Assembly: GCA_965644495.1 (NCBI GenBank)
Contig: CBFFSA010000003.1
Coordinates: 1,269,959 to 1,333,958, forward strand
Direction: 5' to 3'
DNA from: Perkinsela sp. CCAP 1560/9
Taxonomy: Eukaryota; Protista; Euglenozoa: Kinetoplastea
DNA length: 64,000 nucleotides
Every line of letters begins with the position of its first letter. The first letter of the stretch is position 1. This document shows, in pieces, positions 6,340 to 58,617 of the stretch. The translations under genes were made by a program, and so were the position numbers. The notes under the pieces were generated by a model. That model saw only the letters and a list, made by a program, of their open reading frames with translations, was not told the origin of the DNA and ran no database searches.

Positions 6340-7917
6340 AGCCAACTTGACATTCCAACTGAACCAGTTCCGATATTTGCTGTTCATGCTCTCGCACAAA
6401 TTTGTTGAACCCCTTTCTGTTGCTCGATATTCGATATAGTGCTTGCAAATTAACCGGTGTGTCGTTACATATTGGCGTGTCGAAGCTGAGAGGTGCATCC
6501 TTTTTTGCTGGAATTCGAGGCATGTTTGCGCTTCCCGGATACTTGTCTTCAGCGATAACCACAACTCCTCGATATCCGTTGCTTCTATCTCTTGTCTCAC
6601 ATCTCGATTGCGTGTGTTATCAAAGTGCGTTGCAACGTTGGCTGCGAACAATTGTAGAATTCCAGAGTCACGCAAAAGGAACCAAGGAGGATAAGTGTGA
6701 CGTTTCTTCTTATGTACTTTCCATTTAATACAAGCTTCCACTGCATAATGCCCGGTGCTGATCGGAGGTTGTGTGACTCGATGTCGTGAAATTGTCGATG
6801 CAAACCGTCGAGTCAAAATAATGTGACCGAGCTTTTTGGTATAGCCATTGGGAAACCTGAAGGTCCACTCTCTCGCTGTAGGACAAACTTCGAAACCAGA
6901 GACAGCATCTGCATTATCCAAGAATGTTTGGAGACCACAGTACGCCGGTAGTTTTAGTTTTCCTTTTATAGATTGCGTCAAAGGAGCGTTAAAGTCTCCA
7001 TAACAGCTTTCAATTGACGTTTGTTTCGTACGAAAGAATCAGTAAGGCGTGCCATGAACACTTTACGTTCTTCTTCCGGAGCATCGGCAGTTGGCGCGTA
7101 TACATTGTACACCACAGCTTGGTAAGGCTCCATTTCTATTTCAGCATACGCAATTCTTTCGGATACGCTGAAGATGCGACGTAGAGAAAATCTGCTGATG
7201 AACATCAACCCTCCGTAACCATTGTCGGCAGATATGAAATACAAGAAAAAAGTGGTCGTCCCAATTCGTATCGTCTTGACCGGCGAATTTTCACACGTAA
7301 AGCGCGTTTCCTGTACACAACATATCTGTATATCACGCAGTTTTTTTTGACAGCACATGTTCGTAATCATTCATCGAAGGGTTCAAAAGTGCTTTTTGAA
7401 AAATTTACGAAAAAGAAGTCGCAGTTGGGCCCTAAAAAAATATGTATAAAATTGCTTTTTTAAGGGTAGTAATTCATCGAAGTGGACGTCTGGAAATGGG
7501 AAGGGGCATTGTGCAGAAAGGAATGGTAAAGATTCAGATTTCTTATAAGGAGGGGAAAGGAGAGGGTCCACAAGGTATCCTACACGAACGAGTAGACGTA
7601 GAAGTAGACATAATCTTGCGCAACGACGTAGCGATATCCTATCAACGCCGTCCAGTCCCAATGTAATCACGTTCAAAGTCATAATAGTCAAACCCTTGTT
7701 CCTGGCGTTGCACAAACAGGGTTTCTCGTGACTGAGGTTGCCACGCTCAGCCCCATTCCGAGGATAGTACCTCCGCCGCTTTCTCTTACGGGATCCTGAT
7801 CGCTGTGCCTTGACGCTTCCTCCTCAGACAACAACTCTGGCATCAACGGGGGGAAACGGGAATAGTTTATCCGGCACTCTTTCATACTTTACCCACCATC
7901 CCCCATTTCCATACCCT
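6340..7917 (-). pseudogene. APE-type LINE, degenerate endonuclease region
   Basis: IMTLNV, CVQETRF, GYGGLMFI, NVYAPT; homologous to 42610-44513; frameshifts and an internal insert. Confidence 0.8.
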
Positions 7918-18845: not shown

Positions 18846-20988
18846 TACGCCAAAAGGGTCGTAGCGATTGAAATCCGAATACTGCTTTCGCAATTTCGTC
18901 CCGTGGTGGGGAATTAAACGCGTTCCTCAAATCGATTGATAGAATACTGCATCCCTCGTGGTATAGTTCGGAGAGTTCATGGACGATTTGTTCACACCCA
19001 GCCTTAATCATAACACCGTATTGTATGGGCGCAAAGAGCGGTAACAACGTTTTTTCGTACCTCTGCAATAAGATGATTTCTGCTAGCTTAAGCATGGTTT
19101 CACCGACCGCGATTGGGCGGACTCCTCCTGAAGGTTTGGGAATAGCTACTATTCGTGCGCGCTTTAGACGGTGCATCACCTCTTTTGAAAGACCCCCGTT
19201 GATAAGATCTGTAAACATGTGGCAAAGACTCGAGCAACATATCTCATCATCGAGTAGCAAACGCATAATCGAGTCGGTTGTTCCGGTGGGACCTGGTGCA
19301 GCCCCTTTGGCCATACGTCTTCCGGCCTCTCGAATTTCGTTGGAAGTGATGCAGGCAGTTAAAGGGGCATCAGGTGGTAAGGAAAAGGTTGTTGGATGAT
19401 CGGGATGTAGCTCTTTCAGTTTCTTAATCGTGTCATCATCACTCAATTTGCGCGGCGCGACTTCCTGATCAAGGATTCTGGAAGCCTTAGAAACACACCC
19501 GTCGAGCACCATGCTGATTGCTTTCTTTATTGCGCGCGTGTCCGACACAGAGGGGTTTTAACTTTGCTCAGCGGAGAAAGTCTCGCCCGAAGGAGATAAG
19601 GCGGGACGACGGCGTCGACGTTTGGCGTTGGCTTTCCGCACCGTAGCGAGTGAGAATTTCATGGCTGATAGTATCCTGTGCCAGATTTTGTTTCGTTCCG
19701 GGTATGTGCTATCCGCGTATTCGCGAATTATGTCTCTATAAATCGCAATGACACATGGCATGAATTCTGGACTCACAGTGCGTAGAGTAGGCATAGGTTC
19801 ATAGTCTAAATCTTGTTCCGTGTGCGCACATGCGGCATTCTTAGATTTTGGGGCGGGGGAACATGATAACTTGGTCCATACTATTTGAAAGACGCGTACA
19901 TTCGCATGCGGTGGGAGGTGCCCCGAGAACGTTTCTCCCCTCTTGTGTCCATGTATGCCGGAATAGCTTAACGTTATCTAACTCCTGCTCCCACGTTTCC
20001 GCATCAGCGTTACGATTCCTTTCGAGACATTTAACTTTGGTGTGCGATCGAAACTCCAAGCGATAAGACATGTGTCACCTGGTTCGGCACCCTGAGCTTC
20101 CTCCCAAATTTGGTCCGGCGGAATGGGAAAGTTGACAGTTGGATTAACTGTGGTTAGGAAGCTCTCCACGATCTCCTCCTCACTTTGTTTTCCTTCTTGG
20201 ATTGAAAAATCGTTCAGAGCATCTCTTGGCACCTCCGTCAAAGGAGACTCGCAGTCCCTGAATTGATCTTCCGGTTGTAGCTGAATGGTGGGCGCCGGTG
20301 TGCCATTCGTCTGAGCATCAAGGTGCGAGGAATCGGCAGTTGCTTTCGCCACGGTTGAGGAACTTGTTGGTGTAGTATCGTTAAACTCCTCGTTTACTGG
20401 AGCTCTCTTCTCGCGTCGACGGAAAATATTTGTCAGCAGATCCTTCGAGAACAGTTTCGAGGGTATTGTTACCGTGGAGTTTTTCACTGAGGCTGGCGGG
20501 CTGAGCGGTGGAGGTAGGGATGGTTGTTCTCCGTGGAAACACGTTCGCCGGATTTGGTGGCTTGTAGCGGTGAAGTGGGTGGTGGGGATGATGGGGAGTG
20601 CGATCCGGTAGAGTTCTGCGAGACGTTTGAACCTGCAGTTAGGCTCTCTTTCCTCATTCTTTCCTGGCGCAGAGCTTCGTGAAATTTCCAGCGTGCTTCC
20701 TTACGTTCTTTCCTTTGCTGAAAGAGTTCTTCGTAAGAGAGGATGCGTGCAGTCGGATTCAGCGGTCGCAACACTATGTCATCGGTTGTCCTCTCCGTTT
20801 CTTCCGTTTCTTCCGCTCTAGCATCTTTGCCTGGAGATCTGACGGGGGAGCATGAGAGTGCTTTTGCGTAAGTAAGCGTTGCGTCCGGTGAAGTTTGCGA
20901 AACTATCTTTTGCATTTGATTCAGGATGGGTGGGGGACTTGCCGTCAAACGTGATGTGTGTCCTCATTCGCGATCTCCGCGACATCGA

Positions 20989-32200: not shown

Positions 32201-35200
32201 TATTGAACGCATTTTTTAGGTCGATGGCTAAGATGCACGCGCCTTTTCTGTATCGTTCATTTAAGGTGTGTACAATGCGCTCACTCCCCGATTTTGAAAG
32301 CACACCTTGCTGCATTGGTGCGAAAAGGGGTTGAATCGTGGATTCGTATCGCTGAACGAGAATGTTGCCGGCAAGCTTCACCAGCACCTCACCGATGGCC
32401 ACGGGGCGGATACCACCTCCTGTTTTCTGAATCGCTACTAGACGTGATCTTGCCAAACGTTTCATCAGATCTCGCGGAAGAAAACCGTTGATTAGATCCA
32501 TGAGCATGTGGCAAAGGTTTGGGCTGCACACTGGGTCATCAATAAGGAGACGCACGACGCTGTCTGTAGTGCCTGTCGGACCTGGGCTAGCTCCTCTTAC
32601 TAAACGCATCCCTGCTGACCGAAGCTCAGAAGAATCCAAACCAGTAAGAAGAGGCGCATCATTTGGTAGGTTAAACTTGTATTCGTGTTGCGGATGTAAA
32701 TCCTTCAGCCTATCTAGAATCTGATCATCCGACAGAGTGTTTGGGATGAATTTCTGATCAAGAGTTTTGCATGCCTTTCTCGCGCATCCTTCCATGACTA
32801 AACGCGTTGCCTTTTTTATTGCTCTTTTATCCGCTTCGTGCTCATCAGACTTGGTTGGATGATCGCCAGATGTTTCGCTATCGGCTTCGAATGGGCGGCG
32901 GCGTCTTCGGCGATTGGAGGCTTGACGCACTATTGCTAGGGAATATTTCATCGCTGAGAGAACTTCGTGCCAGATTTTGTGCCTTTGTGGATAAGTACTG
33001 TTGATGTATTCACGCATTATTTCTCGGTAAGACGCGATTACAGCGGATATCATTTCCGGTTTTATGACGCGAGATGTTGGAATGGGCACGTAATCCAAGT
33101 CCTTTGACTTCCAACCTTCCTTCGAGTTACTCATGCTTTGCTCGGCCGACTGCCCAAACATGTATTCCCCTTGCGATTGACCGTCGTTTGGATCAATGGG
33201 CGTAGAGGCTGTACACGGGGGTGCTGCAGCATGCCATATCATCCCGTTAACCCTCACACTTTCGTGGGGCGGTAGTGTCCCAGTGAATTCCTCACCAATT
33301 TTATGCCCTACGATCCCCGAGTAGATTATGTTCAGCTTCCAAGAACCTTTCCTACGATACACGCTGGTTACTTTCCCAAGTGAGATGTTGGTGTCATCTC
33401 GATTCCCGAAAGACCACGCGACCGAACATAGCGTTCCTTTTTTGATATGTTGAGACTTCGATTGGATATCGCTTGCTTGTAGAGGAAAGCCTCGTGTAGC
33501 GAATTGGGACGACAGTGTGTCACACATCTCTGCCGAATTCGCATTCTCTACGAACCGAATTCTATCTAGCGCGGAGTTCAACACATTCCCCATTTCAGAC
33601 AAAGTTGTACCACCAGAATTTTCGTCAGGCGCTGGAAGAGGACTGGGAAGTTCCGATTGTACGGGGTTCCCATCACTAATCGTACCGTATGACTTGTGAG
33701 GTTGCGGAGAGGAGAACACAGAATTTACCGATCGAGCTGAATGATTGGTTTGTCGCTCAGAAGCGGTAGAGTCTGTCCCCCCTGCATCCTGCAGATAGTC
33801 TTGCAGATCAGGGCTCTGACCTACGATGGACGCAATCCCGTTGTCCGTACGTTCCTCTACGAACACTTCATTTTTATTATGGAATGCAGACGCAACATTG
33901 GATAAGGGTGATGCGTTCGTGTCCTCATTAGGCCTTTCTTTCGTCTGATTCGCGTCAAAAGGCGTCATAAACGCGATGTCCGGGGCATCTGGCCTCATGT
34001 CCGGGGCATCTGGCGTTTTTGGAGTCAAGAATATGCCCGTACTCTCATCTGGCGGCGTGATAGTTCCGGTGGGCGTGTAGACTGCGGTGGGGTCCGCCTC
34101 GTCGAGCGCATCGGAGAATGGGTCGAAACTGTAAACGTCATAAACATAACCGTTTCCTACCCATTTGTATCCTTTAAATTTCGGATCTTTTGGGTCAGTG
34201 CACTGGGGATTTCGATCTTCCGACAGACCTCCTTCAGCTTCGGGGATGTTTTTATCCATGTTGTCCGAGTCTGTACCTTCTAGTTCATCACTTTTCTTTT
34301 CTGTTAGCTTCTTTGTTGGGGATTTTGAATTTACGAACTTAACTTTTATTTGACGCACCGGTGTAGACGTTGGATTTTTCTCAACTGGAGTGCAAGACGT
34401 ATCCCTTGTTACCTCCCCCTGATCGTTCCAATTGGCATCATTCTTGCTCTGACTGATTCTTTTTTTTGCTCCTTCCTTGACTTGTAGCTCTTCCGGTGAT
34501 GCATTCTGACCGCGGTTTGAAAGTTCAGGTAGGGCTATGTTTGGCTGACTGTTTGCGATCGATGCTATGGCCGAAACAGCTGCCCCGCAGGTTTTAGCAG
34601 CCGCGCAACACGACTTCGCAATAATGGAACTCCACCCGTTTTCATTGTGCGGCGTTAACTTGTATCCTTCGGGTCGACGAATGCGAATTAATGAACTGAT
34701 TTTTCCTTGCCTCGTAGCGTTCGCTTCCTGGTCTTTTCTTTCCTTTACTTTTCTTTCTTCTTCTTCAATTTGTTTCTTCAACTGGTAAAAGGACATTCGA
34801 AAACCTTTTTTTGCATTCTTTTTCACGGTTGGCGGGGTACCCGGACGAGTGAGCGATGTATCTACGGGTGTGCGCGGGGGAGGTGTGCATGTTAAATGGT
34901 CCGGCCGTTGCGGGGGTGGCGATTGTTGCGGTGCTGGAAGAAAGAGCATTTGTTGCGGTGGTGGCGGCGTTTGTTGCGGTGGTGGTGGTGTTCGTTGCTG
35001 CAGCCGTTTCGGGAGTGGCGATTGTTGCGGTGGTTTTTGTGGTGGACGTTGCTGTGTTCGCGCCGATGGCTGCAGTGGTGGCTGTGGTGGTGGTGATCGT
35101 TGCTGCGGCGGTGGTGGCGATCGTTGTGGTAGCGGTTGTGGCGATGGCGGCGGCAGTGGCGTTCCCGCGGTCAGTTTCTTCTTCCGGCGTGTGGGTGGAA

Positions 35201-35261
35201 GCGACTGGACGACGGGAGCTACCCCCGTCTCCTTCGCCTTGGCACGCGTCAGCATGCCCAT
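29276..35261 (-). mobile_element. CRE/SLACS-like element B; one ~1.6-kaa ORF split by a MITE
   Basis: Pro/Gln-rich N-terminus, RGASPGPTG, IRPVAIGE, IDLKNAFN, GVRQGS, YIDD, RLE; the two halves join as QRFFHAEY. Confidence 0.9.
31024..32129. mobile_element. Non-autonomous DNA transposon (MITE); GG termini and 8-bp TSD (Merlin-, MULE- or hAT-like)
   Basis: TIRs GG(C/G)TAGGGGGGACCTTCGATGAA; TSD GAAAAACC at 31016-31023 and 32130-32137; another right end lies near 47820-47869. Confidence 0.85.
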
Positions 35262-37377: not shown

Positions 37378-40188
37378 TCAGTGTCTGTCTAAACGACTTA
37401 CAGGATCTGCCGGGTTGTGCTCGGAGCGGATATACTGCGCCTTGATGCAGATGCCTGCTAGCTGATTCATTTCTAAAACTTTCTTTAACTCCTTTGCTAT
37501 ATTGTCGGAGTTAGCAACCCGTCGGTTAATAGCGCCTTGGCAGGATGTGTTATCAATGAACAGATCTAAACACGTTCCTTTTTGAAAATGATGTCCGAAA
37601 TCCCTCATGGCATTAGTAACGGCCATGGCTTCGGCATGGTTAACTTCATAGCAAAATTCTCTTGGCCAAGAATCCCCTGTAATATGAACTTGTCCATCAT
37701 CAAGATAAAGTACCGCACCCCATCCCTTGCCAGAGGCATCCGTGTAGAGACTATGTTTATGGGGCACAACATCCGGGTGCGGTGGGGGCTCGATCGGCGT
37801 ATTCGTCAAAAGTTCATCTCTCCAAGATGCCAAAATGCACCGCGTATGTTTCGGGAGGGGAACCGGGTCATCCGCGAGGTGTAAATTACGATTGAGTAGA
37901 TTGATTCTGCGTCTCGCTATCTTGAGTGTGAAGTGAAAACGAGGAATAACGTAACCGAGTACCGCTGAAGCGTAGAGGAGACGCCCCACCGCCGTCTCCA
38001 ATTGGGCATATGTGATTGTACCGAATCGATCGCGCTTCAGTTTGGCTAGTACACGGGGTCCCAGGCTAACCCTATGTACTGTGTGATCGTATTTAACTCC
38101 ATTAAATACGTACTGTGTCTCCGGGGGAGATCCGTCCTCCTTGAATAGGCCATTGGCTGCCTTGCATCGCGAATCAATTTTTTGCGCATATTCGCTGGCC
38201 TGTTGTTCATTCGCTGCATATCGAACCCCGTCGACGTACACGTCGATGCCACTGTCGGCAAACGTAGCTCCCGGCTTACATACCGCCGGATCTCCGGCCA
38301 AAACAGAAGTTATAACCTGCATGATTTCCGGGGCACATCGATGCCCCATAGGCATAACCTTCATTTGGTAGAGATTACCATCTCCACCGCGAAATCGAAA
38401 CTTCGCACGGACCTTCGTTGGAACCGGGACTTGGTAAAATCCACACTTCAGGTCCCTTTTAACCCCGACCTCCGCTTCAGCGCGATGCAAATATTTGGAA
38501 GGGTGGAGGAGAGGTACGGCTGGTTTGTAGTCCTTAAGGCGCTCATTATCGTCGAGCGTCCATGAAATAAATCTGCGTCGGAATTGTCCTCCCTCATCCG
38601 CTTCGACTACTGTGAAGGGAACGAGATACTGTATGGTCGGCGCCTTTTGCGCCGCGTCCTGGGTTACTCTTTCAATTACATTGGCCTCTAATAATTCAGT
38701 AATATCAGAGGGTAGCAGGTTTCCCTTGATTGGGGGCTGCGGTTGAGGGGAAATTCGAGTGCAAAATAATTTGTTGAGAACCTCGTTAAAACGATACCGC
38801 GTGTCGTGACGCATCCATTCTTTGAGTTTATCTAGGTCCATACTTGGAATTCCGCTCTTCACATGCAAAGGGTAATGCATATCTTTAGCCTGTGCCAAAC
38901 GAGACGACCGTCGAGCACATAGTATACTATATCGTTTAACATGGGGCACCTGTTCGAGGCATTTATCAACCTCCTTTTGGGTTATTGGAGCGGTAGGAGG
39001 GCCGAAGCTCGATGCGTACCAAGGGCCTTCGCCGTCGTGACCAAGTCGGCGTTGTACCGTAAGAGGGAGTTTATGCTCTGATGCTTTGCGATAGTTTGCA
39101 CGTCGGCGATTGTTGCCTTTCCTAGAGCGATTTCCCGGAATAGGTGTGTCACTGCCCCCCTTTTTATTGAGTGAGTCCCGAAATTCTGTCCCAGAATCTT
39201 GCGTATTGCACGGTCCATCTCGTGTACTGTTGTGATACTTATCCTTTGACCTGCTATCATACTGCCCACGTATCGAGCTATTTCCGGAGTTCCTTGACCG
39301 CGTATTGTCGTACACATGGAGATTCGATATGGGTTTAGCCTTGTCGTCTTCGTGTTCCTTCCCCAGTACACGATTACTTCCTCTGGATTGTACTTGACGA
39401 ATCGGTCCTTGGTGAGGTCCGCGACTTCGGTCCACCGAGCGACAGCCTTCCAACATATGAGCACCGCCATTGAGTCTCTTGGTCTCAGGACGGATCTGAG
39501 CTTTTGAATGTGCCATGGTGTTGCTGGTGTCATTTGTCTGGTTGGCTCTAATGCTCCCCTGGCCTGTAGTGCTTTTGCGTAAAGCTGTAGTGGACCCGTG
39601 GGCATCTTGGCGAGATTGAAAATTGCTTGAAGACTCCTGGTGTATGCGAGAATGGTCGCCGGTGCGAGGTGCAATTGATTTAGAAATACGACGGCGTTGA
39701 TTGGTTCGATGCCGAGCATTTCTGCCGTGCAAAAGCTGGCGAGGCGGTCCCACAGACGACTGCGTGTCATCCACGTGGTGGTCGTCCACATTGGTTCGAT
39801 TGCGCGCCACACCCGTTCCACTATCGCGCTTTGCTGATGTATGTTTAGCATTGTACATGTTAATTTTCGCTTTGCGAATGCTTCCTTGTGTTCTGGTTTT
39901 GGAGCGTGGGGTACGGGCTTGGGACGCTTTTGAGGTAATTGTTTTGTGAACCCCTGAGGAGGGAACGCAACACTTGCATGTGATGGAACTATAAGCTTGG
40001 ATAAAGGCGAAGAAATGCTTGATAAGTTCACCCGCCGCTTTTTCAGCGGACGGGCACGAGCGAGTCCTGGTGTATTCACCCCGCGCTTGAGCAGCGGTAG
40101 GGCACGAGCGATGTAAGGGGTGGGGGGCCTTCCCTATTGGCCCCGCTTCGCACCAGCGGTGCCGCCCGTCACCCCCAAACGAAAACCC
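37378..40188 (-). CDS. Pol (linker overlapping YR, then RT and RNase H), probably reached by -1 frameshift
   Basis: KRDLKCGFYQ, MPMGH, YVDG, YTDASGKGWG, NPADPVSR; frame is open from the slippery site. Confidence 0.9.
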   Translation of the reverse strand, partial: GFSFGGDGRHRWCEAGPIGKAPHPLHRSCPTAAQARGEYTRTRSCPSAEKAAGELIKHFFAFIQAYSSITCKCCVPSSGVHKTITSKASQARTPRSKTRTQGSIRKAKINMYNAKHTSAKRDSGTGVARNRTNVDDHHVDDTQSSVGPPRQLLHGRNARHRTNQRRRISKSIAPRTGDHSRIHQESSSNFQSRQDAHGSTTALRKSTTGQGSIRANQTNDTSNTMAHSKAQIRPETKRLNGGAHMLEGCRSVDRSRGPHQGPIRQVQSRGSNRVLGKEHEDDKAKPISNLHVYDNTRSRNSGNSSIRGQYDSRSKDKYHNSTRDGPCNTQDSGTEFRDSLNKKGGSDTPIPGNRSRKGNNRRRANYRKASEHKLPLTVQRRLGHDGEGPWYASSFGPPTAPITQKEVDKCLEQVPHVKRYSILCARRSSRLAQAKDMHYPLHVKSGIPSMDLDKLKEWMRHDTRYRFNEVLNKLFCTRISPQPQPPIKGNLLPSDITELLEANVIERVTQDAAQKAPTIQYLVPFTVVEADEGGQFRRRFISWTLDDNERLKDYKPAVPLLHPSKYLHRAEAEVGVKRDLKCGFYQVPVPTKVRAKFRFRGGDGNLYQMKVMPMGHRCAPEIMQVITSVLAGDPAVCKPGATFADSGIDVYVDGVRYAANEQQASEYAQKIDSRCKAANGLFKEDGSPPETQYVFNGVKYDHTVHRVSLGPRVLAKLKRDRFGTITYAQLETAVGRLLYASAVLGYVIPRFHFTLKIARRRINLLNRNLHLADDPVPLPKHTRCILASWRDELLTNTPIEPPPHPDVVPHKHSLYTDASGKGWGAVLYLDDGQVHITGDSWPREFCYEVNHAEAMAVTNAMRDFGHHFQKGTCLDLFIDNTSCQGAINRRVANSDNIAKELKKVLEMNQLAGICIKAQYIRSEHNPADPVSRLDRH
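38982..40133 (-). CDS. Tyrosine recombinase (same frame as gag, after its stop; start uncertain)
   Basis: AVARW, NTKT, THSIKRG, AKH, LLRY. Confidence 0.88.
   Translation of the reverse strand, partial: GRPPTPYIARALPLLKRGVNTPGLARARPLKKRRVNLSSISSPLSKLIVPSHASVAFPPQGFTKQLPQKRPKPVPHAPKPEHKEAFAKRKLTCTMLNIHQQSAIVERVWRAIEPMWTTTTWMTRSRLWDRLASFCTAEMLGIEPINAVVFLNQLHLAPATILAYTRSLQAIFNLAKMPTGPLQLYAKALQARGALEPTRQMTPATPWHIQKLRSVLRPRDSMAVLICWKAVARWTEVADLTKDRFVKYNPEEVIVYWGRNTKTTRLNPYRISMCTTIRGQGTPEIARYVGSMIAGQRISITTVHEMDRAIRKILGQNFGTHSIKRGAVTHLFREIALGKATIADVQTIAKHQSINSLLRYNADLVTTAKALGTHRASALLPLQ
40104..40188 (-). promoter_or_regulatory. Putative -1 frameshift signal
   Basis: G GGT TTT (40182-40188), 6-nt spacer, pseudoknot GGGGTG/CACCCC plus ACGGGC/GCTCGT. 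Confidence 0.75.
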
Positions 40189-41168
40189 GAAGTGTTTGTA
40201 CGTTGTACCGGCTGATTGAGGATAGGACACTGTGCACGGAAATGACCGGGCTTATGGCACTTATAACATAGTAAACCGGGTTTAGTCATCTTAGTGGTGC
40301 GCAACTGGCGAAGTTTCTCATCTGCGACAACCTTGGAATATGCATCTTTGGTTTCGTCCTCTTTGTGCAGCTTTAACTGCAAGTTTTCAATAGGAATACC
40401 CTGGGAGGACCAGTAGTGGTTTCGAAGCTCCTCTATAGCTGTTTGGACGATCGCCAAGAAGTGTTCTTCGCGCCACATAGGGAACACACGGGCTGCATAC
40501 ACCCACTCCTGGATTATCTTAAACAGCCGCTCTCGTATCGGGGGCGAGTTGAACAACAAACCAAATTCCGGCGCGGCTCGAAGATCGCGAATGAGGTCAC
40601 GTACACGGAGTTCATCTTCGGATTCCAGCCAAGGACCCCACGTCAAAGGCTCGTAGGTGGTGAATTTCGCTGGGTCGGTGATAATCTTGGATGTGGGCGG
40701 AGTCTCGTCAGTCTTCCTACCCCCGGGCATAACCGCACGGACGCTGGTAATTTCTAACGAAAAATAGTTAATGTCCGGAAAGGGGAAATCGTAAGCCATA
40801 CCCGGCTCGTCGGCCCATTTGGCTTCCAAATTTCCTGATCCATCCCCTTTGAGAGCAATCACGCCGATAACTGTTTGACGGTGTGTTTCGCCGATATGCC
40901 CCCATACCGCCTCAACAGAAACTTCATATCCCCGCTCAAGGAGGGACTTTACTTTAGCCGCAAATTGCAGCTTAACTTCCTCTGTCATGGCTTCCGCGCC
41001 ATCGCCGCCGCGAAGCAAGGCCGCCACCTGCTCCGGGTTTAGCGTGTGTCGCTGCTCTCCGGTTTGCTGGAAGGTTGGACTGACAGGTTCATGCGGGTCA
41101 CGAGGAGGTGGACTATCCTGCCGGCCCATGGAGAGTGTTCGGCGCACGGTATTTAAAATACCTGCCAT
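40134..41168 (-). CDS. Gag-like protein with CCHC knuckle
   Basis: CYKCHKPGHFRAQC; ATG lies just after repeat A1. Confidence 0.9.
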   Translation of the reverse strand: MAGILNTVRRTLSMGRQDSPPPRDPHEPVSPTFQQTGEQRHTLNPEQVAALLRGGDGAEAMTEEVKLQFAAKVKSLLERGYEVSVEAVWGHIGETHRQTVIGVIALKGDGSGNLEAKWADEPGMAYDFPFPDINYFSLEITSVRAVMPGGRKTDETPPTSKIITDPAKFTTYEPLTWGPWLESEDELRVRDLIRDLRAAPEFGLLFNSPPIRERLFKIIQEWVYAARVFPMWREEHFLAIVQTAIEELRNHYWSSQGIPIENLQLKLHKEDETKDAYSKVVADEKLRQLRTTKMTKPGLLCYKCHKPGHFRAQCPILNQPVQRTNTSGFRLGVTGGTAGAKRGQ

Positions 41169-41736: not shown

Positions 41737-42594
41737 TTGTTTTTTGAAGACCTTTGTTTTTTTGAAGACCTTTGTTTTTTTGAAGACCTTTGTTTTTTTG
41801 AAGACCTTTGTTTTTTTGAAGACCTTTGTTTTTTTGAAGACCTTTGTTTTTTTGAAGACCTTTGTTTTTTTGAAGACCTTTGTTTTTTTGAAGACCTTTG
41901 TTTTTTTGAAGACCTTTGTTTTTTTGAAGACCTTTGTTTTTTTGAAGACCTTTGTTTTTTGAAGACCTTTGTTTTTTTGAAGACCTTTGTTTTTTTGAAG
42001 ACCTTTGTTTTTTTGAAGACCTTTGTTTTTTTGAAGACCTTTGTTTTTTTGAAGACCTTTGTTTTTTTGAAGACCTTTGTTTTTTTGAAGACCTTTGTTT
42101 TTTTGAAGACCTTTGTTTTTTTGAAGACCTTTGTTTTTTTGAAGACCTTTGTTTTTTTGAAGACCTTTGTTTTTTTGAAGACCTTTGTTTTTTTGAAGAC
42201 CTTTGTTTTTTTGAAGACCTTTGTTTTTTTGAAGACCTTTGTTTTTTTGAAGACCTTTGTTTTTTTGAAGACCTTTGTTTTTTTGAAGACCTTTGTTTTT
42301 TTGAAGACCTTTGTTTTTTTGAAGACCTTTGTTTTTTTGAAGACCTTTGTTTTTTTGAAGACCTTTGTTTTTTTGAAGACCTTTGTTTTTTTGAAGACCT
42401 TTGTTTTTTTGAAGACCTTTGTTTTTTTGAAGACCTTTGTTTTTTTGAAGACCTTTGTTTTTTTGAAGACCTTTGTTTTTTTGAAGACCTTTGTGTTTTT
42501 GAAGACCCTTGTTTTTTTGAAGACCTTTGTTTTTTTGAAGACCTTTGTTTTTTTGAAGACCTTTGTTTTTTTTGAAGACCTTTGTTTTTTTTGA
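41737..42594. repeat. 18-bp tandem array (TTTTTTGAAGACCTTTGT), ~47 copies
   Basis: Near-perfect periodicity seen directly. Confidence 0.97.
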
Positions 42595-42609
42595 ATATTC
42601 TTCAAAATT

Positions 42610-45566
42610 ATGGCGAAGGCGTCCGGGCCTTGCGAGAAGAGTATAGTGAATCTTCTAGTACGGTCCACGTTAGGTCGGGGTGTCCTTTTTGAACCAACTT
42701 TGGATTTTGATGGACATGCTAAACTTCGCCTGCGTACTGTGATGAGAATATGTAAAATTCTTCGTCCTGGCGACTGCATCACGCTGTGCTGGCGATATGC
42801 GGGGGCTGCGAAGTATCGGGTTTGGAGGGGGGATGTTACACAGAGAGGTTATGGGTCTCTCTTTCAGCTAGGTCGCTGGCGGGTGAAATACTACCGGCGA
42901 TCGGAAACGCTTCCTTTCCCGCCGTATGACCCACGTATAGTGCTGTGTGGGGTGCGAATTCGGAAACCTCGACGTTCGAATACCCGAAAGAAAGTACGTA
43001 AAAATAGGGCACTGTGTGGCAAGCATGCTCTTCGCGACAACGACCCTGAAGGGTCTGCTGTGAGGAAGTATTTATCTATAGGAACTCTTAACACGACTTC
43101 GTTGAAACTTAAGGGCGACGACGTTTTCAGACTGAAAGCATCCTCCCGATTACATGAAACATTGCGATATATGGCTCAGAAAGATTTGCATGTTCTGGCT
43201 TTACAGGAAACAAGATTCTCTTTTACTTCTAGCGGTGGGTCTGACATTTTGCGCAGGCAACTACGGTACGGAGATAAACACTTTTTCATCTACCTTTTGT
43301 CGGCGGTGAATGGGTACAACGGTATGGGGTTTATCTCTCAGCATCCGTTTTTGAAGGTTTGGAAGGTGAGTGACAGGATCATGGGGGCCGAGTTTACTAT
43401 AGAAGGGGGGTCGGCCTTTATCATGAATGTATATGGGCCGACGCGCGATTCTTCACAAGATGCAATGGAAGAGTTTGACATTTCTCTCACCACTGCGTTT
43501 CATGACGCAGTTGGTAAATATTCACGACGGCCAGCTCTTCTCCTTGGAGATTTGAATGCACCGCTCACTTTTAAAAATAAGACAGAAGAGGACGCGCTAT
43601 CAATGGAAAGATTAGAAGGCCTTTTAGAAGGAATAAATTGTAAATCGGGGCACATCTTATGCCCAAGCCGCCGTAAATATACATGTATACTGCCGAACGA
43701 TGCTAAGCGACAGCTCGATCACATTGCAGTGTGTTCGCGCTTTGCGTCTGCCCTACATAAACATCAAGTTTTTGGCGCACCAACACCAACTGTACACTTT
43801 CTGGTGAGAGCCGAGATCAAGATCAAATGGAAAGTTTCCACAAATACCCACAGAAATAAGATTCCCTGGCTTCAACTTTCTAACCCAGAACATAGTGAAA
43901 AATTTAACAAACGAATCTGCGATCATGTCAAAGGCGAACTGCACAACAAGGATTTCCCTTCCTGGGATCTTCTTGCCTCTTGCCTTCGATCGTCTGGCAG
44001 GGAAATTCCGAAACCACAAAACAAAATATCTCTTGAAATCGATTCGCCAATGGAAACGCTCGAAGGAACCGAAACTGGTTATTTGCGCAGAATCTTTGAG
44101 CTAAGCAGAAAACACAAGGACTTCAATGAATTGGTTTTACAAACACAGGTGCCAATAGAGGAAGCAATAGCCAAATCATGTGATGTCCTGGAAAATAAAC
44201 TAAAGAAGAATCATGCCAGCCCATGGAGAGCTCTGAAAGAAATATGTGGAGTTCATCGCGCCGATTTTAAGATTTCAGGGACCTGTAATAAACAAAAGCT
44301 GGCGGAAATCAAATCATTCTTCGAAGCCTGTGCGGGAGACGCCGGGGGGGACACGAATATAAAATTTCCTGAGGCCAAACCATCCCCTAACACGATTAAC
44401 GACTCCACTTTTACGGAAGATGAGCTTCAAATTGGCATCTCACACTTTGGTAAAGGAAAATCGCCAGGAAAAGACGAAATCCCAATGGAAGCCTTGAAAT
44501 GCATAGCTGGTAAGTTGGCCAGGGGCGCTTCTAGTGTAAATCAGTAGTTTAGGCTGTTGGTTTAGAGTAGAAGCGTTGGGGCTTAGCGCACCTCGCCACC
44601 CGAGCTGCAAACTTCCATTGAAGCGATAAAATTACAAAACAAAATATATAAAGTCCATATTTCATCATCATAAAGAGAAAAAGAAAAAGAAAAAGAAAAT
44701 CTTAATGGATAGTTCTTGGATAGTTGGGTTGCTGTTCGTCTGTTGTAGGTGTAGATTTCTCTTCGTAAATTGAGAGAAGGGGGGAAGGTGAACATTTCTC
44801 ACATACAAGTGACTTGTCTGGTAACGAGTTACTTCGAGATTGGCTGCTATGTGTCATAAACAGAGTTCACGATACCGGGATGGCTCCGGATGTTTGGGGT
44901 GATGTCTTACAAGTTCCTATACCAAAAAAGGGTGATTTGAGTCTTCTTAAGAACTGGCGACCTATTTGCTTAGTGAATTGCATCGTCAAACTAATGAACA
45001 GTTTAATCTTGCAACGAATGAGACCTTATGTGGAGCCCGTGCTTCGCGAGAATCAATATGGGTTTCGACCAGATCGCTCAACAACTCAAGCCCAGGCGAT
45101 TCTCAACGAAGCAAGAGTTAAAGCTTTGCGGGAAAATGGGCTCAACATTGGTTTCGTGGATTTTGCAAAGGCTTTTCCATCTGTTTCGTTTGATGCTATC
45201 AGGGCATCTCTGGTAGCATTCCACATTGGCCCCAAGTTAGTAGAAATGATTATGTCGGTCTATCGCAATATGAGAGGCGTCGTTCGTACACCGTATGGGC
45301 TAACGGAAGCTTTCCCCATCACGACAGGAATTCTACAGGGCGACGTTCTCGCACCGTACCTCTTTGTTATGGTCCTGGATCGAATATTATTTAAGGCAAT
45401 AGATTCAAAACCCCACGGCATCTTATTATCATCCAAGGGTACGAGGAGCAGAGGGTTACGGGAAACGCGGCTCACTGATCTGAATTATGCTGACGATTTG
45501 CTCCTATTTGGGAGCGACAAGGAAGACTTGCAAAGCATGATGGAAGATACAGCAGAGCAAGCCCTC
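42610..45566 (+). pseudogene. APE-RT LINE (Ingi/RTE-like), interrupted and 3'-truncated
   Basis: IGTLN, LQETRF, NVYGPT, GDLNA, LDHI; RT motifs PKKGD, NWRPI, QYGFR, DFAKAF, QGDVLAP, YADD; ~310-bp insert near 44514-44818 flanked by CTGGTAA. Confidence 0.9.
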
Positions 45567-45788
45567 ATAGTTTACGGAGAGAATTGGGCGAATAAATTAT
45601 TTACGTTATACCAGTTTATCTATTGTGTGATGGCCGAGGGGCATTGTACCTGTTGTGAGAATTCAACTGATTTGATATATACACCCCCCAGATGTAACCC
45701 CATGTGTATACAGACGAATATGACGTTTGCTATGGTGATTATAAATTCAAGACTGTATTTCCTTTGTTAATTCGCGACAGTTAAAGTT

Positions 45789-45824
45789 CTTTAACGATAA
45801 AGATACAGTTTCTGTACCTTGTTG
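45789..45824 (+). other. Spliced-leader exon (retroposed)
   Basis: ACAGTTTCTGTAC...TTG core as in kinetoplastid/diplonemid SL; not followed by a GT intron. Confidence 0.85.
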
Positions 45825-45865: not shown

Positions 45866-46991
45866 ATGACCGTGGTTGACGCTCCTTCAACGCGAGCTTT
45901 ACGGTCGTCGCGTAGTTCTTCCCCTACTGCTGAGTCGCTCGTGCCTACCGAGACGCTCACGCAGCAGGAATTAAGTCTCGTTTGTACGGTGGCCAGAGAG
46001 CGATTATTTGTGAAACCCTCGGTGCAGGTGCAGGCATCTTTCCGTCGCAAGGATGATCGTAATGGTGCTCGACAAACGTTGATGGGCAAGTTGCGCAAGG
46101 AAGGTCTTGACTTATGGGGGGTGTGGGAAGATAAGCCGTCTAAGGAGTACCCCTTTCCTCACCCGGATTTGGACTATTTTGAGATTAACATTATTGAGGA
46201 TCGCGAGGTGCCGTCATCAGTTGCTAATTCGCAAGTCCCTATTTCTGAGCCAGTGGGATCGTCTGGGGAACTGCCAAGTAGCGCCCAAGAAATGGCGGGG
46301 GAGACAGATTGAGGGACCCTCCTTGACGCTTCCGGAGGCCCCACAGGAGGGCAAGCCCAGGCTCCTTGACCCCAACGCATTGAACCCTTATGAACCGATA
46401 ACCTTTGAACCGTGGATTAATGCGTTAGACGACGACGGATTCCGTACCAGAGATTTGATTCGCGAGCTGAGAGAGGCCCCGGAATTTGGTTTGCATGGTA
46501 ACCGATTTTATTATGATCGGAGCTTCGTTAAGCAGCAGGAACGTGTGTTCAATTCGATTTTTTGCAAGTGGATTGTTTTTGCTCGGTTGATACCAAATTG
46601 GAATCAAGGGGTCTATCTCGAGATGGGACGCGGAATAATTCAAACCCTTCGGGATGCTTACTGGCGGGCGCGCCGAGTTGACGTTGATCTCGTCCACCAG
46701 AAAATGGAGAAAGATGTACGCCCAGAGGACAAATTTTATCATCATGTGAGCGATCAGTTAGTCGAACGACAAAAACTGTACGCCCGAGTCCAATCGTTTT
46801 CTACTTCAGGAACGCAAGTTTCACGCCCAAATCCAGTACCTTTTCGTCAGACCGGACCTCTTCAGCGACGAAATTTGTTGTGTTTCGGTTGCCGGTCACC
46901 AGAACATATCTGGCGCAATTGTCCCAAGCGCTTTAATCAGGATTTTCGCTCGCGGGTGGCTGGCCCTGCCGCAGGCAGCAAGAGTTTATGA
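45866..46991 (+). pseudogene. Gag (frameshift near 46300)
   Basis: Two ORFs jointly colinear with 40134-41168; CFGCRSPEHIWRNC. Confidence 0.85.
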
Positions 46992-51200: not shown

Positions 51201-52786
51201 GTTTAGTGTCACTGTCTGTGAACATTCATCTCAGTTTCTTTTCATAGACTTTCAGTGTTTACGAATAGCCTTCACACAACACAAAATCAACAAACAGAAC
51301 AATATTTCTACCAGAAACAATACATACAAGTTCTCACGATTCTGCATAGGCGGAAGAGGGGGAAGAGTAGTAGTATTAATGAGAAACCTAAACAACGGTA
51401 CGATCATCAAGGAAACTAGCAACATTCGTAACTCTCAATGAAATCTAATATTAGGATTAGGATTCGTAGGAGGAGGAAAGGGGGGAGAGCTCGCTGAGGT
51501 CTTTCTCTAGGCAAGAGAAAGAGTAAAGAAAAGAGAGAGAAGGGAAGGGAGAAAGACAGAAAGCTTTGTTCGCATTTGAGGAACATTTTTGACCTAAGAT
51601 CGAAGTCCTCCGATACATTGTCCAATCCTCCGTATACATTGTCCAAAATCCGTGTTGCTTTACTCAAATTTCCTGCTTTTGCTGCTGTCAGTGCGTTTCT
51701 TATTGACCGCTGATCGATTGCAAGTTCTTGGCGTTGTTCTTCACTCAGATTTTGGTCATCTAAGAGCTCGCGGTGTCTACGGCGGTGGGCTGAACTCTGT
51801 TTTCTTTTCAAAGTGAGACGAACTGTGGCCAGCGAATCCCTTGGAGCATCCAGTAATTTATGCCATATGGCAGTTTTCTCTGATTCTAAAATGGTTTTAG
51901 GGTAGTCTCGTACAATGGATCGGAAGATGGCTACTACATGAACTGCAAATGATGGATCGATTTGAACGAATGTCGGTAGAGGTTCATAGTCTTGGTTATT
52001 CTCGGCGCTTTCTTCTTCTTCGTCTTGATCTTCATTCTCCTCGTCCAGGAAATTCCCAATCGCCTTTATCTTATTCAGCTTAACAGCACTTAGCGACCAT
52101 ATTTTAATTCTGTCTGACGACGGTAAGTGTAGGATACCTTGTGGACCCTCTCCTTTGCCCTCCTTATAAGAAATCTGAATCTTTACGATTCCTTTCCGTG
52201 AGGATCTTTTTACGACTTCGCCAACGGAGTGATACATCTCTTTATTCCTGCTAAATCCCCATCGCACCTCGCAAGTCGTACCTTTGCCCCATTCTCTAAT
52301 AATTTGTTGGACTTGGTCAGGGGCTTTTGCGAAACATGGGTTGCTCTTGTTTTCTTCACCGTCTGTCGACATAGAATCTGATTGTGTCGCTTTTTCTTCT
52401 TCGGACTTTGAGGCGTTCGATTCATCATTTTCCGAAGTTTCTATATCGATATTTCCTCGTTCAATTCTGTTTCGCATCGTGTATCTCTTCAACTTGATGA
52501 GATTCGAATTCTTCGCTTCCACTTGATCATGAATTTCGTGGTCAGCCCAAATTGGAGAAATGTCTTTTCCTGTGCTTTGACTGATAACCCTAATTCGTGG
52601 TGTCTTCTTGGGTTTCGGTGCGGTCTCACTTTTATTGTAGCTCGGCTCGGTGATTCTGGTGTTCGGAGAAGCGCTACAGCGTCCTTCGCTACAATCATCC
52701 TTCCGGGTAGCTTGCAGAAAATTTCCCGATGTCGCCCCGATGTCGTCCGTGAAGTGTTTTCCAAATCTCGCTTGACGAGCGAACAT
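48227..52786 (-). mobile_element. CRE/SLACS-like element C, interrupted at ~50540-51630
   Basis: RGAAPGPTG, DFKNAYN, GVRQGS, YQDD, GPDLAIMW..YDVTVVH; ATGTATAC duplicated at the interruption. Confidence 0.88.
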
Positions 52787-57242: not shown

Positions 57243-57280
57243 AACTTTAACGATAAAGATACAGTTTCTGTACCTTGTTG
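57243..57280 (+). other. Spliced-leader exon (retroposed), 38 nt
   Basis: AACTTTAACGATAAAGATACAGTTTCTGTACCTTGTTG directly after a poly(A). Confidence 0.85.
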
Positions 57281-58582: not shown

Positions 58583-58617
58583 TTTAACGATAAAGATACA
58601 GTTTCTGTACCTTGTTG
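58583..58617 (+). other. Spliced-leader exon at the 5' end of a full-length CRE
   Basis: Same sequence as the other two copies; ATG at 58668. Confidence 0.85.

Follow-up and report, generated by a model that had tools for sequence, protein, structure and literature searches.

A putative Tudor-like barrel module common to LINE, CRE-like and tyrosine-recombinase retroelements of Perkinsela sp. CCAP 1560/9

Seven segments of the window (the whole 64,000-nucleotide stretch of Perkinsela sp. CCAP 1560/9 DNA analysed here) are probably copies of a single module, in which a helix precedes a five-stranded barrel of the SH3-like (Tudor-like) kind, carried in the proteins of three kinds of retroelement. 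As judged from its sequences, the module measures approximately 75-85 residues and has the signature G-x6-8-W-x12-G, followed by an aromatic residue (Y/W) and then by [LF]P[FP]P. All seven strings quoted in an earlier note on this DNA were recovered at their positions by six-frame translation of the window (Table 1), and the W-to-G spacing of 12 residues reported there for the clear cases holds in five out of five and is constant throughout the alignments of the three families (LINE W61/G74, CRE W29/G42 and Gag W33/G46). The description of the carriers as three unrelated classes was too strong, the APE-LINE and the CRE-like element both being non-LTR retrotransposons.

Table 1. Module copies in the window and the segments originally quoted for them
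Feature	Position	Quoted segment	Strand	Remarks
APE-LINE N-terminus, 137 aa	42610..43020		+	LINE-specific leader aa 1-40, helix and barrel aa 41-120, then basic tail
LINE-type barrel proper	42727..42975	42757-42960 (enclosed)	+	Broad LINE-type HMM, E 5.8e-26
LINE-type fragment, C-terminal half with FPFPP	7773..7913 (match)	7825-7917	-	E 3.5e-4
CRE-type module	33171..33497	33232-33450	-	CRE HMM, E 2.7e-51
Divergent CRE-type module, ORF 51416-52786	52094..52324	52075-52295	-	CRE HMM, E 8.8e-11
CRE-type module, decayed copy with one in-frame stop	19837..20139	19870-20095	-	CRE HMM
Gag-type module, helix and barrel	40692..40997	40748-40940	-	AlphaFold pLDDT 83.9
Divergent Gag-type module, second YR element	46019..46204	46000-46195	+	Gag HMM, E 4.4e-12

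The APE-LINE carries Exo_endo_phos in ORF 42610-44547 and RVT_1 in ORF 44814-45770, while the LINE-type fragment (G000:C3:1277731-1277871) corresponds to query residues 85-131 and has one TGA within the match. The best-preserved CRE-type stretch (33171..33497), which is also matched by LINE profiles, occupies aa ~594-690 of a 1045-aa ORF (32124-35261, minus strand), where it is preceded by a long Pro/Gln-rich region and lies ~250 aa upstream of the reverse transcriptase (RVT_1, aa 944-1021); this copy is therefore internal and not N-terminal as had been stated for the CRE elements. The divergent CRE-type copy is the best non-LINE match of the broad LINE-type HMM among 785 six-frame fragments of the window (E 8e-5), and in ORF 48227-50578 downstream of it RVT_1, a C-terminal Cys/His motif and a PD..D-like stretch are visible. 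CRE-like is used here as a working label only, for what looks, in that ORF, like a reverse transcriptase with a CCHC motif and a restriction-like endonuclease tail behind it; this order characterizes the CRE clade, whose members insert into spliced-leader genes. The decayed copy is matched by the CRE HMM in two pieces (20139-19990, E 1.4e-14; 19974-19837, E 3.7e-13) and has a reverse transcriptase fragment downstream (18697-19548).

The first Gag-type module occupies aa ~58-159 of a 344-aa Gag-like ORF1 (40134-41168), which also contains a zf-CCHC match (aa 301-315, E 5e-4). With a tyrosine-recombinase (YR) ORF at 38982-40079, recognized by a weak Phage_integrase match (E 0.008, profile positions 22-168 of 172), and an RT/RNase H ORF at 37378-40230 containing RVT_1 and RT_RNaseH, this element keeps the VIPER-like gene order of Gag-like ORF1, YR and RT/RNase H. 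The Gag of the second YR element is spread over ORFs 45866-46312 and 46107-46991, and its module aligns in register in both the family and the all-class alignments.

When searched as a regular expression, the motif gave 8 matches at 7 places in the window, compared with a mean of 0.94 in shuffled windows; five of these places are true cases and two, near 23.3-23.5 kb, are chance. If the downstream [LF]P[FP] is included, 4 matches are obtained versus 0.00 in shuffled windows. The motif was defined after the fact, and the decisive test is therefore the comparison of profiles. For this, each class forms a conserved family of many members in which long ORFs are intact, the 21-Mb genome containing at least 124 LINE-type, at least 150 CRE-type and at least 144 Gag-type matches, and in protein searches with the three classes near relatives and the genome's own proteins make up almost all homologues.

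Compared in this way, the three versions are conserved families whose kinship is visible between profiles, the LINE type occupying the centre. Apart from self-matches, a narrow LINE HMM run on 4370 six-frame fragments scored CRE modules highest (E from 8.6e-4) and Gag modules next. HHalign comparison of own-genome alignments gave P 1.3e-4 for LINE-CRE, a value reached by 0 of 120 shuffles, and P 0.014 for LINE-Gag, reached by 3 of 120. With a broad LINE-type profile of 46 sequences, the HHalign probability rises to 93.2% for CRE (P 3e-7) and 90.2% for Gag (P 1.5e-6), with alignments spanning 67-68 columns. The proposal of one domain common to LINE, CRE and YR elements is thus upheld for the LINE-CRE and LINE-Gag pairs, but not for CRE and Gag taken directly, whose two profiles gave no signal when compared, whether locally, globally or at low mact; on the profile evidence, the tie between them runs through LINE only. 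Significant profile similarity and agreement of the predicted folds of the LINE and Gag modules, the two points on which that proposal hinged, were both found.

The fold itself was predicted with AlphaFold for two of the three versions, both of which bear out the beta-barrel that had been suggested. The LINE model (m66ba425910b3, core pLDDT 78-85) consists of a helix at residues 41-50 and strands at 56-63, 70-78, 90-94, 100-103 and 110-118, and the Gag model (mffb1b6faf9d5) of a helix at 7-22 and strands at 25-35, 42-50, 58-62, 70-72 and 77-89. The predicted topology, a helix and then a five-stranded barrel, is identical in the two, this likeness being judged from the order of elements and from common PDB neighbours: 18 of the top 50 neighbours among 48,161 PDB chains are common to both models, which match identical ranges of these chains, and the DSSP state is identical in 56 of 70 columns of the HH alignment. 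For the CRE module a barrel may be assumed because its profile matches that of the LINE type with an HH probability of 93%.

The modelled fold appears to be SH3-like and nearest to the Tudor repeats of Spindlin and Agenet proteins, with every match below significance. In the PDB profile search with the LINE type, Spindlin-4 was best (E 0.018, not significant) and Agenet (AGDP3) the next protein (E 0.28), Agenet matches ranging from E 0.16 to 0.28 across the PDB profile searches. The three-class alignment brought no gain, Spindlin disappearing from the E<=10 list once CRE and Gag were added, while the CRE alignment gave no matches and the Gag alignment a single chance ankyrin match. A Pfam scan of the modules found no match at E<=10 save one chance PKD_4, and the best scores among 32 LINE-type barrels scanned singly (Spin-Ssty E 0.44, BAHCC1-like Tudor E 0.13 and ARF_AD E 0.064) each came from just one or two members. 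Foldseek against viral structures returned nothing at or below 0.03, and in a feature search of the ESM-Atlas the CRE module scored no higher than 0.84, which is uninformative.

As for function, it is quite possible, if short of probable, that the barrel is a ligand-binding adaptor by which the element protein or RNP docks with a chromatin mark or a methylated protein of the host. The module sits in the non-enzymatic N-terminal part of each protein: ahead of the AP-endonuclease in the single-ORF APE-LINE, ahead of the reverse transcriptase in the RLE-type CRE-like LINE, and within the first half of the Gag-like ORF1 in the VIPER-like YR element. In the LINE type W61, W72, Y94 and F103 may form the pocket, and docking through it could bias the place or time of integration. 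These aromatics are kept in 41, 44, 41 and 44 of 46 LINE-type sequences, respectively, and the PDB profile alignment sets the family's W, W and Y opposite cage residues of Spindlin Tudor I, as these are given in PMC8838590. A cage common to all three versions is doubtful because the second cage tryptophan is missing in the CRE type (N-x-S) and in the Gag type (T-V); the conserved aromatics could also be plain core residues, the cage being a candidate suggested by sequence alignment.

The same module may instead be a nucleic-acid binder that reads no protein or chromatin mark and, like barrels of the Sm, WYL, KOW or cold-shock type, holds on to the RNA of the element itself, or to its single-stranded DNA intermediate, as the RNP is assembled, which we regard as possible, if somewhat doubtful. 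The incomplete cage of the CRE and Gag types fits this reading, as do the strongly basic tail behind the LINE barrel, the CCHC knuckle in the same protein as the Gag barrel, and the need of single-ORF LINEs, having no ORF1p, for some RNA-binding part. Against it, and not decisively, the sole sequence leads are the Tudor-family repeats named above, the barrel occurs in tandem in related LINEs in the manner of tandem Tudor/Agenet readers, and the surroundings of the barrel are acidic in the Gag version. A wider form of the docking reading, that the barrel reads one host mark (methylated chromatin or a methylated RNP protein) and so directs element orders of three integration chemistries (APE-primed, RLE-primed and tyrosine-recombinase) to one set of TE islands in a compact euglenozoan genome, seems to us unlikely; if true, it would mean that otherwise unrelated mobile elements have handed on a common address label, comparable, in Tudor-like form, to the chromodomain of chromoviruses.

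Relatives outside this genome bear on how the module came to be in several classes, for which a common origin followed by passage between element classes, or by capture from one host source, is suggested. At E<=0.001 the LINE profile matches 35 proteins among 1.84 billion; the 15 of these that were read, together with two longer ones scanned with Pfam, are APE/RT elements, TE-like fragments and one bacterial repeat protein. The last of these (P0035), in which four weak repeats were matched, was set aside as probably spurious. Related environmental LINEs carry the barrel in tandem, while the APE-LINE of this genome has a single one. An environmental Gag-YR-RT element has an ORF1 (P0054/P0038) that itself matches the LINE profile (E 1.2e-4 in the 1.84 billion proteins) and an ORF2 similar to the YR of the window (E 8e-19); its locus (L092/L093) also has the gene order of Gag-like ORF, YR and RT/RNase H, and the full-length Gag HMM finds no similarity to P0054 outside the barrel.

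That each class captured the module separately from one host Tudor-like gene family is quite unlikely. It would agree with a tree in which the CRE type and the Gag type each form one clade (96/90 and 100/100) on an unresolved backbone, and with AU tests, which reject neither a single YR clade (p 0.19) nor CRE and Gag standing apart from all LINE types (p 0.20). On the other side, the CRE barrels join the first barrel of the tandem-type LINEs (91/79), the environmental YR ORF1 joins other LINE barrels (82/83), and no evident host gene carrying the barrel was seen among the LINE-profile proteins examined. The tree and the AU tests are not decisive on exchange between classes, on its direction or on the number of events.

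Very unlikely, in our assessment, is that the three barrels are not homologous at all, small SH3-like barrels having evolved or been recruited independently so that strand patterns and a few Gly, Trp and Pro residues coincide. Small beta-barrels are indeed common and have simple alternating patterns, identity between the classes is just 11-23%, CRE and Gag lack a direct signal, and genome searches with single sequences never gave a match that crossed class. These points are set against broad-profile HH scores lying ~10 sd above column shuffles, 0 of 100 of which reached the observed values (maxima 20.2 for CRE and 18.9 for Gag, versus 38.3 and 34.5 observed), and against HH probabilities that remain at 68-95% when subsets are removed by jackknifing. 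In a transitivity test, the CRE-Gag alignment implied by LINE scored +11.8 versus -37.6 +/- 9.3 when permuted (p 2e-4) and was, of the 31 offsets compared, the one register with a positive score; shifts of +/-2, by which the strand alternation is preserved, scored approximately -36. Joint two-class HMMs place the third class above all decoys, but with E of only 0.01-0.7. A blind MAFFT alignment of 39 sequences of all classes recovered the register with G74 and P104 invariant in 39/39, the invariant positions of the three families coinciding, and the LINE-type barrel in the ORF1 of the environmental YR element has library-wide significance.

An artefact of nested insertions, by which LINE 5'-end pieces within CRE and Gag ORFs would mimic a common domain, is effectively refuted: chimeras do exist (a 5'-truncated LINE N-terminus fused in frame behind a Gag barrel at locus L077, which is P0028, and a single 2501-aa open frame on contig C17 containing LINE and CRE modules), but in sequence the CRE and Gag modules are each specific to their class, they keep a constant place with respect to the RT or the CCHC knuckle, they are conserved in hundreds of copies across subfamilies down to ~25-40% identity, and with only the above cross-class identity to LINE barrels they are not recent LINE fragments.

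In conclusion, one barrel family is present in three element orders of a single genome and in environmental relatives, and this small family is previously undescribed: it has no entry in Pfam and is not known from the published accounts of kinetoplastid elements. Accessory domains of retroelements decide the site and manner of integration, and to our knowledge such domains are known for few lineages, such as the chromodomains of chromoviruses and the zinc-finger/Myb domains of R2. The supposedly domain-less Gag-like ORF1 of YR elements gains its first predicted domain and single-ORF LINEs gain an N-terminal module, at times in tandem. The four aromatics and the invariant glycine and proline offer a testable handle on how elements share a genomic compartment, making this a clean case for the study of module sharing among mobile elements.

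Among known systems, the Tudor repeats of Spindlin and Agenet proteins are alike in their five-stranded SH3-like barrel of ~55-70 residues, in the alignment of Spindlin Tudor I cage positions with the W, W-x-G and Y of the module (PMC8838590), and, as tandem Tudor readers, in the tandem arrangement seen in related LINEs. Five antiparallel strands within ~50-70 residues, as in royal-family barrels, are also what the LINE and Gag models predict. In the royal family (Tudor, Spin/Ssty, Agenet and chromo-barrel), methyl-lysine or methyl-arginine is bound by a cage of three to four aromatic residues. In contrast with these proteins, the module has no significant match to any Pfam Tudor-clan model, is preceded by an N-terminal helix, joins strands 4 and 5 by an invariant turn rich in proline ([LF]P[FP]P), has an incomplete cage in its CRE and Gag versions, and is encoded by retroelements rather than by host chromatin proteins, being known here from sequence and models.

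The chromodomain of chromoviruses (Ty3/gypsy) lies at the C-terminus of an LTR-element integrase and biases insertion toward marked chromatin. It resembles the module as a small beta-rich reader-like accessory domain fused to a retroelement protein, and in a published account (PMC3605345) it is presented as the hallmark of a whole element lineage. Unlike it, the module has five strands behind a helix, stands N-terminal to APE/RT or within Gag with no integrase involved, and is common to three element orders of differing integration chemistry; the likeness would be a functional analogy for targeting only.

The modules of non-LTR ORF1 proteins (RRM, PHD, esterase, CCHC) are likewise modular accessory domains, and PHD is a histone-tail reader fold too. 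They differ from the barrel, which has another fold, shares an ORF with APE/RT instead of having an ORF1 to itself and is found also in tyrosine-recombinase Gag. Published work on LINEs (PMC4120745) describes their accessory domains as modular and shuffled between lineages in the course of reticulate evolution. The WYL/Sm-like SH3 barrels (PafBC, DriD, BrxR) and the C-terminal barrel of TrmB are, unlike the module, bacterial or archaeal ligand-sensing domains, and the modules have no sequence similarity to them in Pfam scans, the WYL family model with its conserved W-Y-L signature giving no match.

Finally, the kinetoplastid VIPER and TATE elements share the order of Gag-like gene, YR and RT/RNase H with the YR element of the window. 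Some VIPER ORF1s also bear a CCHC box, and no conserved domain is given for VIPER/TATE ORF1 in the literature (PMC6681497), whereas the ORF1 of this genome contains a well-predicted helix and barrel domain (pLDDT 83.9).

Three retroelement proteins, those of an APE-type LINE, a CRE-like LINE and a tyrosine recombinase (YR) element, carry a conserved, foldable and homologous barrel in their N-terminal part, outside the enzymatic domains. Every string quoted in the earlier note was reproduced by six-frame translation at its interval, seven in all. The ORF holding the focal LINE segment runs into Exo_endo_phos and, past a frame break, RVT_1 follows, making this a single-ORF APE-type LINE. The Gag-bearing element, with YR and RT/RNase H ORFs downstream of Gag, is VIPER-like by its Gag-YR-RT/RH gene order (PMC6681497). 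Two descriptions had to be corrected: the classes had been called unrelated, while two of them, the APE-LINE and the CRE-like one, belong to the non-LTR retrotransposons, and the CRE modules had been called N-termini, while in the 1045-aa CRE ORF the module occupies approximately residues 594-690, upstream of RT and preceded by a long Pro/Gln-rich region.

Coordinates of modules, element ORFs and neighbouring features (window positions unless a locus is named)
Feature	Position	Strand	Details
Focal LINE segment	42757-42960	+	residues 50-117 of ORF starting at 42610
LINE-specific leader	42610-42729	+	columns 1-45 of own-genome LINE alignment; helix 8-17, short strand 24-26
LINE RVT_1	44814-45770		past the frame break
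CRE-type ORF	32124-35261		runs into RVT_1
CRE-type ORF (RT fragment)	18697-19548		runs into RVT_1
CRE-type ORF	51416-52786		upstream of RT ORF 48227-50578
RT ORF	48227-50578		Cys/His motif, restriction-like endonuclease tail
CRE [FY]P[ILV]P motif	33440-33497	-	also in own-genome CRE copies
Gag-type ORF	41168-40134		344 aa, CCHC knuckle
ORF after Gag	40079-38982		weak Phage_integrase
18-bp tandem array	41737-42610		~870 bp
DDE_1 transposase ORF	17140-18630	-	496 aa, E 7e-5
13-base core	45806-45818, 57262-57274, 58599-58611	+	0.04 copies expected
Gag-LINE fusion (P0028)	locus L077, 1288-2064	-	259-aa open frame
LINE and CRE modules in one frame	own assembly, contig C17, ~171910-176619	-	2501 codons
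VIPER-type Gag-YR-RT element	L092, 1-3817; L093, 1-3401		GCA_007375695.1, VMET01000082.1

The 18-bp array abuts the LINE start codon and produces long artificial repeat ORFs on both strands. The DDE_1 ORF lies directly downstream of the RT fragment of the decayed CRE copy, a DNA transposon sharing a TE island with it. The 13-base core resembles the spliced leader of kinetoplastids; two of its three sites were read, and at both it is part of one shared string of about 35 bases immediately ahead of an element ORF (start codons at 45866 and 57309), suggesting copies reverse-transcribed from trans-spliced mRNA. This core, the VIPER-like gene order and the lack of named relatives together suggest a euglenozoan source, probably a protist akin to kinetoplastids.

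Single-sequence searches of the 21-Mb assembly gave at least 124 matches for the LINE N-terminus, at least 150 for the CRE module (150 of 305 candidates scored) and at least 144 for the Gag module, many of them in open frames of 1,000-2,800 codons and with identity down to about 30%; no such search crossed from one class to another. The own-genome alignments are shallow (9-12 sequences per class), and the genome was read at 90 loci, short of its most divergent copies and of any host paralogues. A few positions are unchanging within each class, and the W-x12-G spacing claimed for five segments is indeed fixed family-wide (W61/G74 in LINE, W29/G42 in CRE, W33/G46 in Gag). The leader of the LINE type has its own invariants (R23, G24, F27, P29 and A37-K38-L39-R40) and is missing from both other versions, CRE and Gag. 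In CRE modules, the [FY]P[ILV]P motif is conserved some 18 residues ahead of the barrel glycine, and an LPP turn follows strand 4; the FPFP region of the Gag HMM matches the former weakly (locus L077, E 0.052).

The three classes cluster in the same stretches, e.g., contig C1 at 3.10-3.32 Mb, the window and many small contigs, which would be equally expected from selection against insertions elsewhere. At L077, a 5'-truncated LINE N-terminus continues the reading frame of the Gag barrel just ahead of it, a frame-preserving nested insertion leaving both module versions adjacent. The long frame on contig C17 has a LINE N-terminal module with a CRE module about 1470 codons further.

Kinship between the classes is apparent at the profile level. 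When a LINE N-terminus HMM was run against 4,370 six-frame fragments from the window and 90 fetched loci, CRE modules led its non-self matches, with E from 8.6e-4 and in one common register, followed by Gag modules (E 0.3-9). With own-genome alignments, HHalign scored LINE-CRE at 30.4 (P 1.3e-4; none of 120 shuffles reached it, maximum 18) and LINE-Gag at 19.4 (P 0.014; 3/120), and gave no signal for CRE-Gag. An independent check came from the CRE-Gag alignment implied by the two LINE alignments: it scored +11.8, while permuting the columns gave -37.6 +/- 9.3 (p 2e-4), its register being the sole positive value among 31 offsets, including those of +/-2, which preserve strand alternation.

Run in full with HMMER against 1.84 billion representative proteins, the LINE profile returned only 35 at E<=0.001, many of them APE/RT LINEs with two barrels in tandem; ten were source-checked and came from ENA, JGI or Logan assemblies, one of them labelled 'hypothetical protein' and one having a cluster member with a MAG record. 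Tandem barrels ahead of the endonuclease were seen in the environmental LINE relatives P0030, P0031, P0033, P0034, P0037, P0040, P0026 and P0044, the second barrel having an LPFPPP or LPPPP turn. Such an architecture is tandem-Tudor-like and is missing from the LINE of the window.

Adding library members to own-genome sequences gave a broad LINE-type profile of 46 sequences, which joins the classes as the earlier note had proposed: 93.2% HH probability with CRE (P 3e-7, 67 columns, score 38.3; shuffle maximum 20.2, 0/100 reaching it) and 90.2% with Gag (P 1.5e-6, 68 columns, score 34.5; shuffle maximum 18.9, 0/100). These values held at 86-95% and 88-91%, respectively, when one set of members at a time was left out (those of uncertain context, the LINEs most similar to CRE, or every own-genome LINE); APE-verified members alone gave 95% for CRE and 68% for Gag. 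Aligned blind with MAFFT, 39 sequences drawn from the three classes fell into the same register, with G74 and P104 invariant in 39/39. Among 785 fragments of the window, the best non-LINE matches of the broad HMM were precisely segments of the earlier note (E 8e-5, 0.014, 0.031 and 0.037), the first decoy standing at 0.31.

Other evidence was obtained outside this genome. The library protein P0038 (cluster member P0054) matches the LINE profile at a library-wide E of 1.2e-4, has no APE domain and is ORF1 of a three-ORF unit on its contigs, in which ORF2 matches the tyrosine recombinase of the window (E 8e-19 by BLASTP, with Phage_integrase at E 8.5e-4) and RVT_1 lies in ORF3. A YR element elsewhere thus has a LINE-like barrel at database-wide significance, which supports the LINE-Gag link independently of the Gag family of the window. 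One copy, a complete-looking VIPER-type element (L092/L093), is on a contig filed under a bacterial MAG, 'Candidatus Peregrinibacteria', and is most probably mis-binned eukaryotic DNA.

The proposed beta-barrel is borne out in the two predicted structures, each consisting of one helix and five strands: LINE (mean pLDDT 69, core 78-85; helix 41-50, strands 56-63, 70-78, 90-94, 100-103 and 110-118) and Gag (pLDDT 83.9, pTM 0.71; helix 7-22, strands 25-35, 42-50, 58-62, 70-72 and 77-89). In both, the [LF]P[FP]P motif ends the short fourth strand, and each helix or strand meets its counterpart in the sequence-only HH alignment, where the DSSP state agrees in 56 of 70 aligned columns. Among 48,161 PDB chains, 18 of the top 50 neighbours are common to both models over the same chain ranges, including Spindlin-4 37-108, GatD 4-75, mitoribosomal L19 516-596, PafBC WYL, TrmB, Spt5 KOW and the PARC CPH domain. 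Judged by element order and common neighbours rather than by direct superposition, the models appear alike; the CRE type, given its HH match to the LINE type, presumably folds as the same barrel.

As to the name, the module is fairly described as a small barrel of the SH3-like kind that comes closest to Tudor-family repeats, and 'Tudor domain' is not established, since the best PDB matches of the LINE-type profile (Spindlin-4 at E 0.018, then an Agenet protein and L19) and the weak Pfam matches, including Spin-Ssty, BAHCC1 Tudor and ARF_AD (a Tudor-like domain), all fall short of significance.

Whether the module was exchanged among elements is a separate issue. When the 39 barrels are placed in a tree, those of the Gag type form a single clade (100/100), as do those of the CRE type (96/90). 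The CRE clade is joined to the first barrel of tandem-type LINEs (91/79) and the environmental YR ORF1 to other LINE barrels (82/83). With the backbone open, and AU tests compatible both with one YR clade (p 0.19) and with CRE and Gag standing apart from every LINE type (p 0.20), the data do not indicate giver, receiver or frequency of transfer.

The barrel probably serves as a binding adaptor. By the earlier note's analogy with chromodomains, its docking partner could be a methylated protein of the host or a mark on chromatin, a reading we place first, tentatively and at less than an even chance. A targeting role would fit the CRE version, given its position ahead of RT; in RLE-type elements (R2-type), this region normally holds target-DNA-binding motifs. 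Binding of the element's own RNA or single-stranded DNA is possible and comes close behind, favoured by the WYL, KOW, L19 and Sm-like structural neighbours, by the basic tail that follows the barrel in the LINE type and by these LINEs having no ORF1p. Self-assembly or some other role takes the remainder.

For docking, the comparison is with Spindlin1, whose first-repeat cage consists of Trp62, Trp72, Tyr91 and Tyr98 (PMC8838590). In the profile alignment, the W, W-x-G and Y of the family fall on the tryptophans and tyrosine of this repeat, and LINE-type barrels keep W61 (41/46), W72 (44/46), Y94 (41/46) and F103 (44/46), the last being the likely equivalent of Tyr98; the second tryptophan is missing from the CRE type and from the Gag type. 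A VIPER/TATE survey describes the Gag-like ORF1 as having no conserved domain (PMC6681497), the figure legend for CRE, INGI, VIPER and TATE in a 2025 paper on the trypanosomatid mobilome lists no such module (PMC12278014), and a full-text literature search for Tudor domains in kinetoplastid non-LTR elements returned nothing relevant. Established precedents are the modular, reticulate evolution of LINE ORF1 domains (PMC4120745) and the chromodomains of chromoviruses (PMC3605345).
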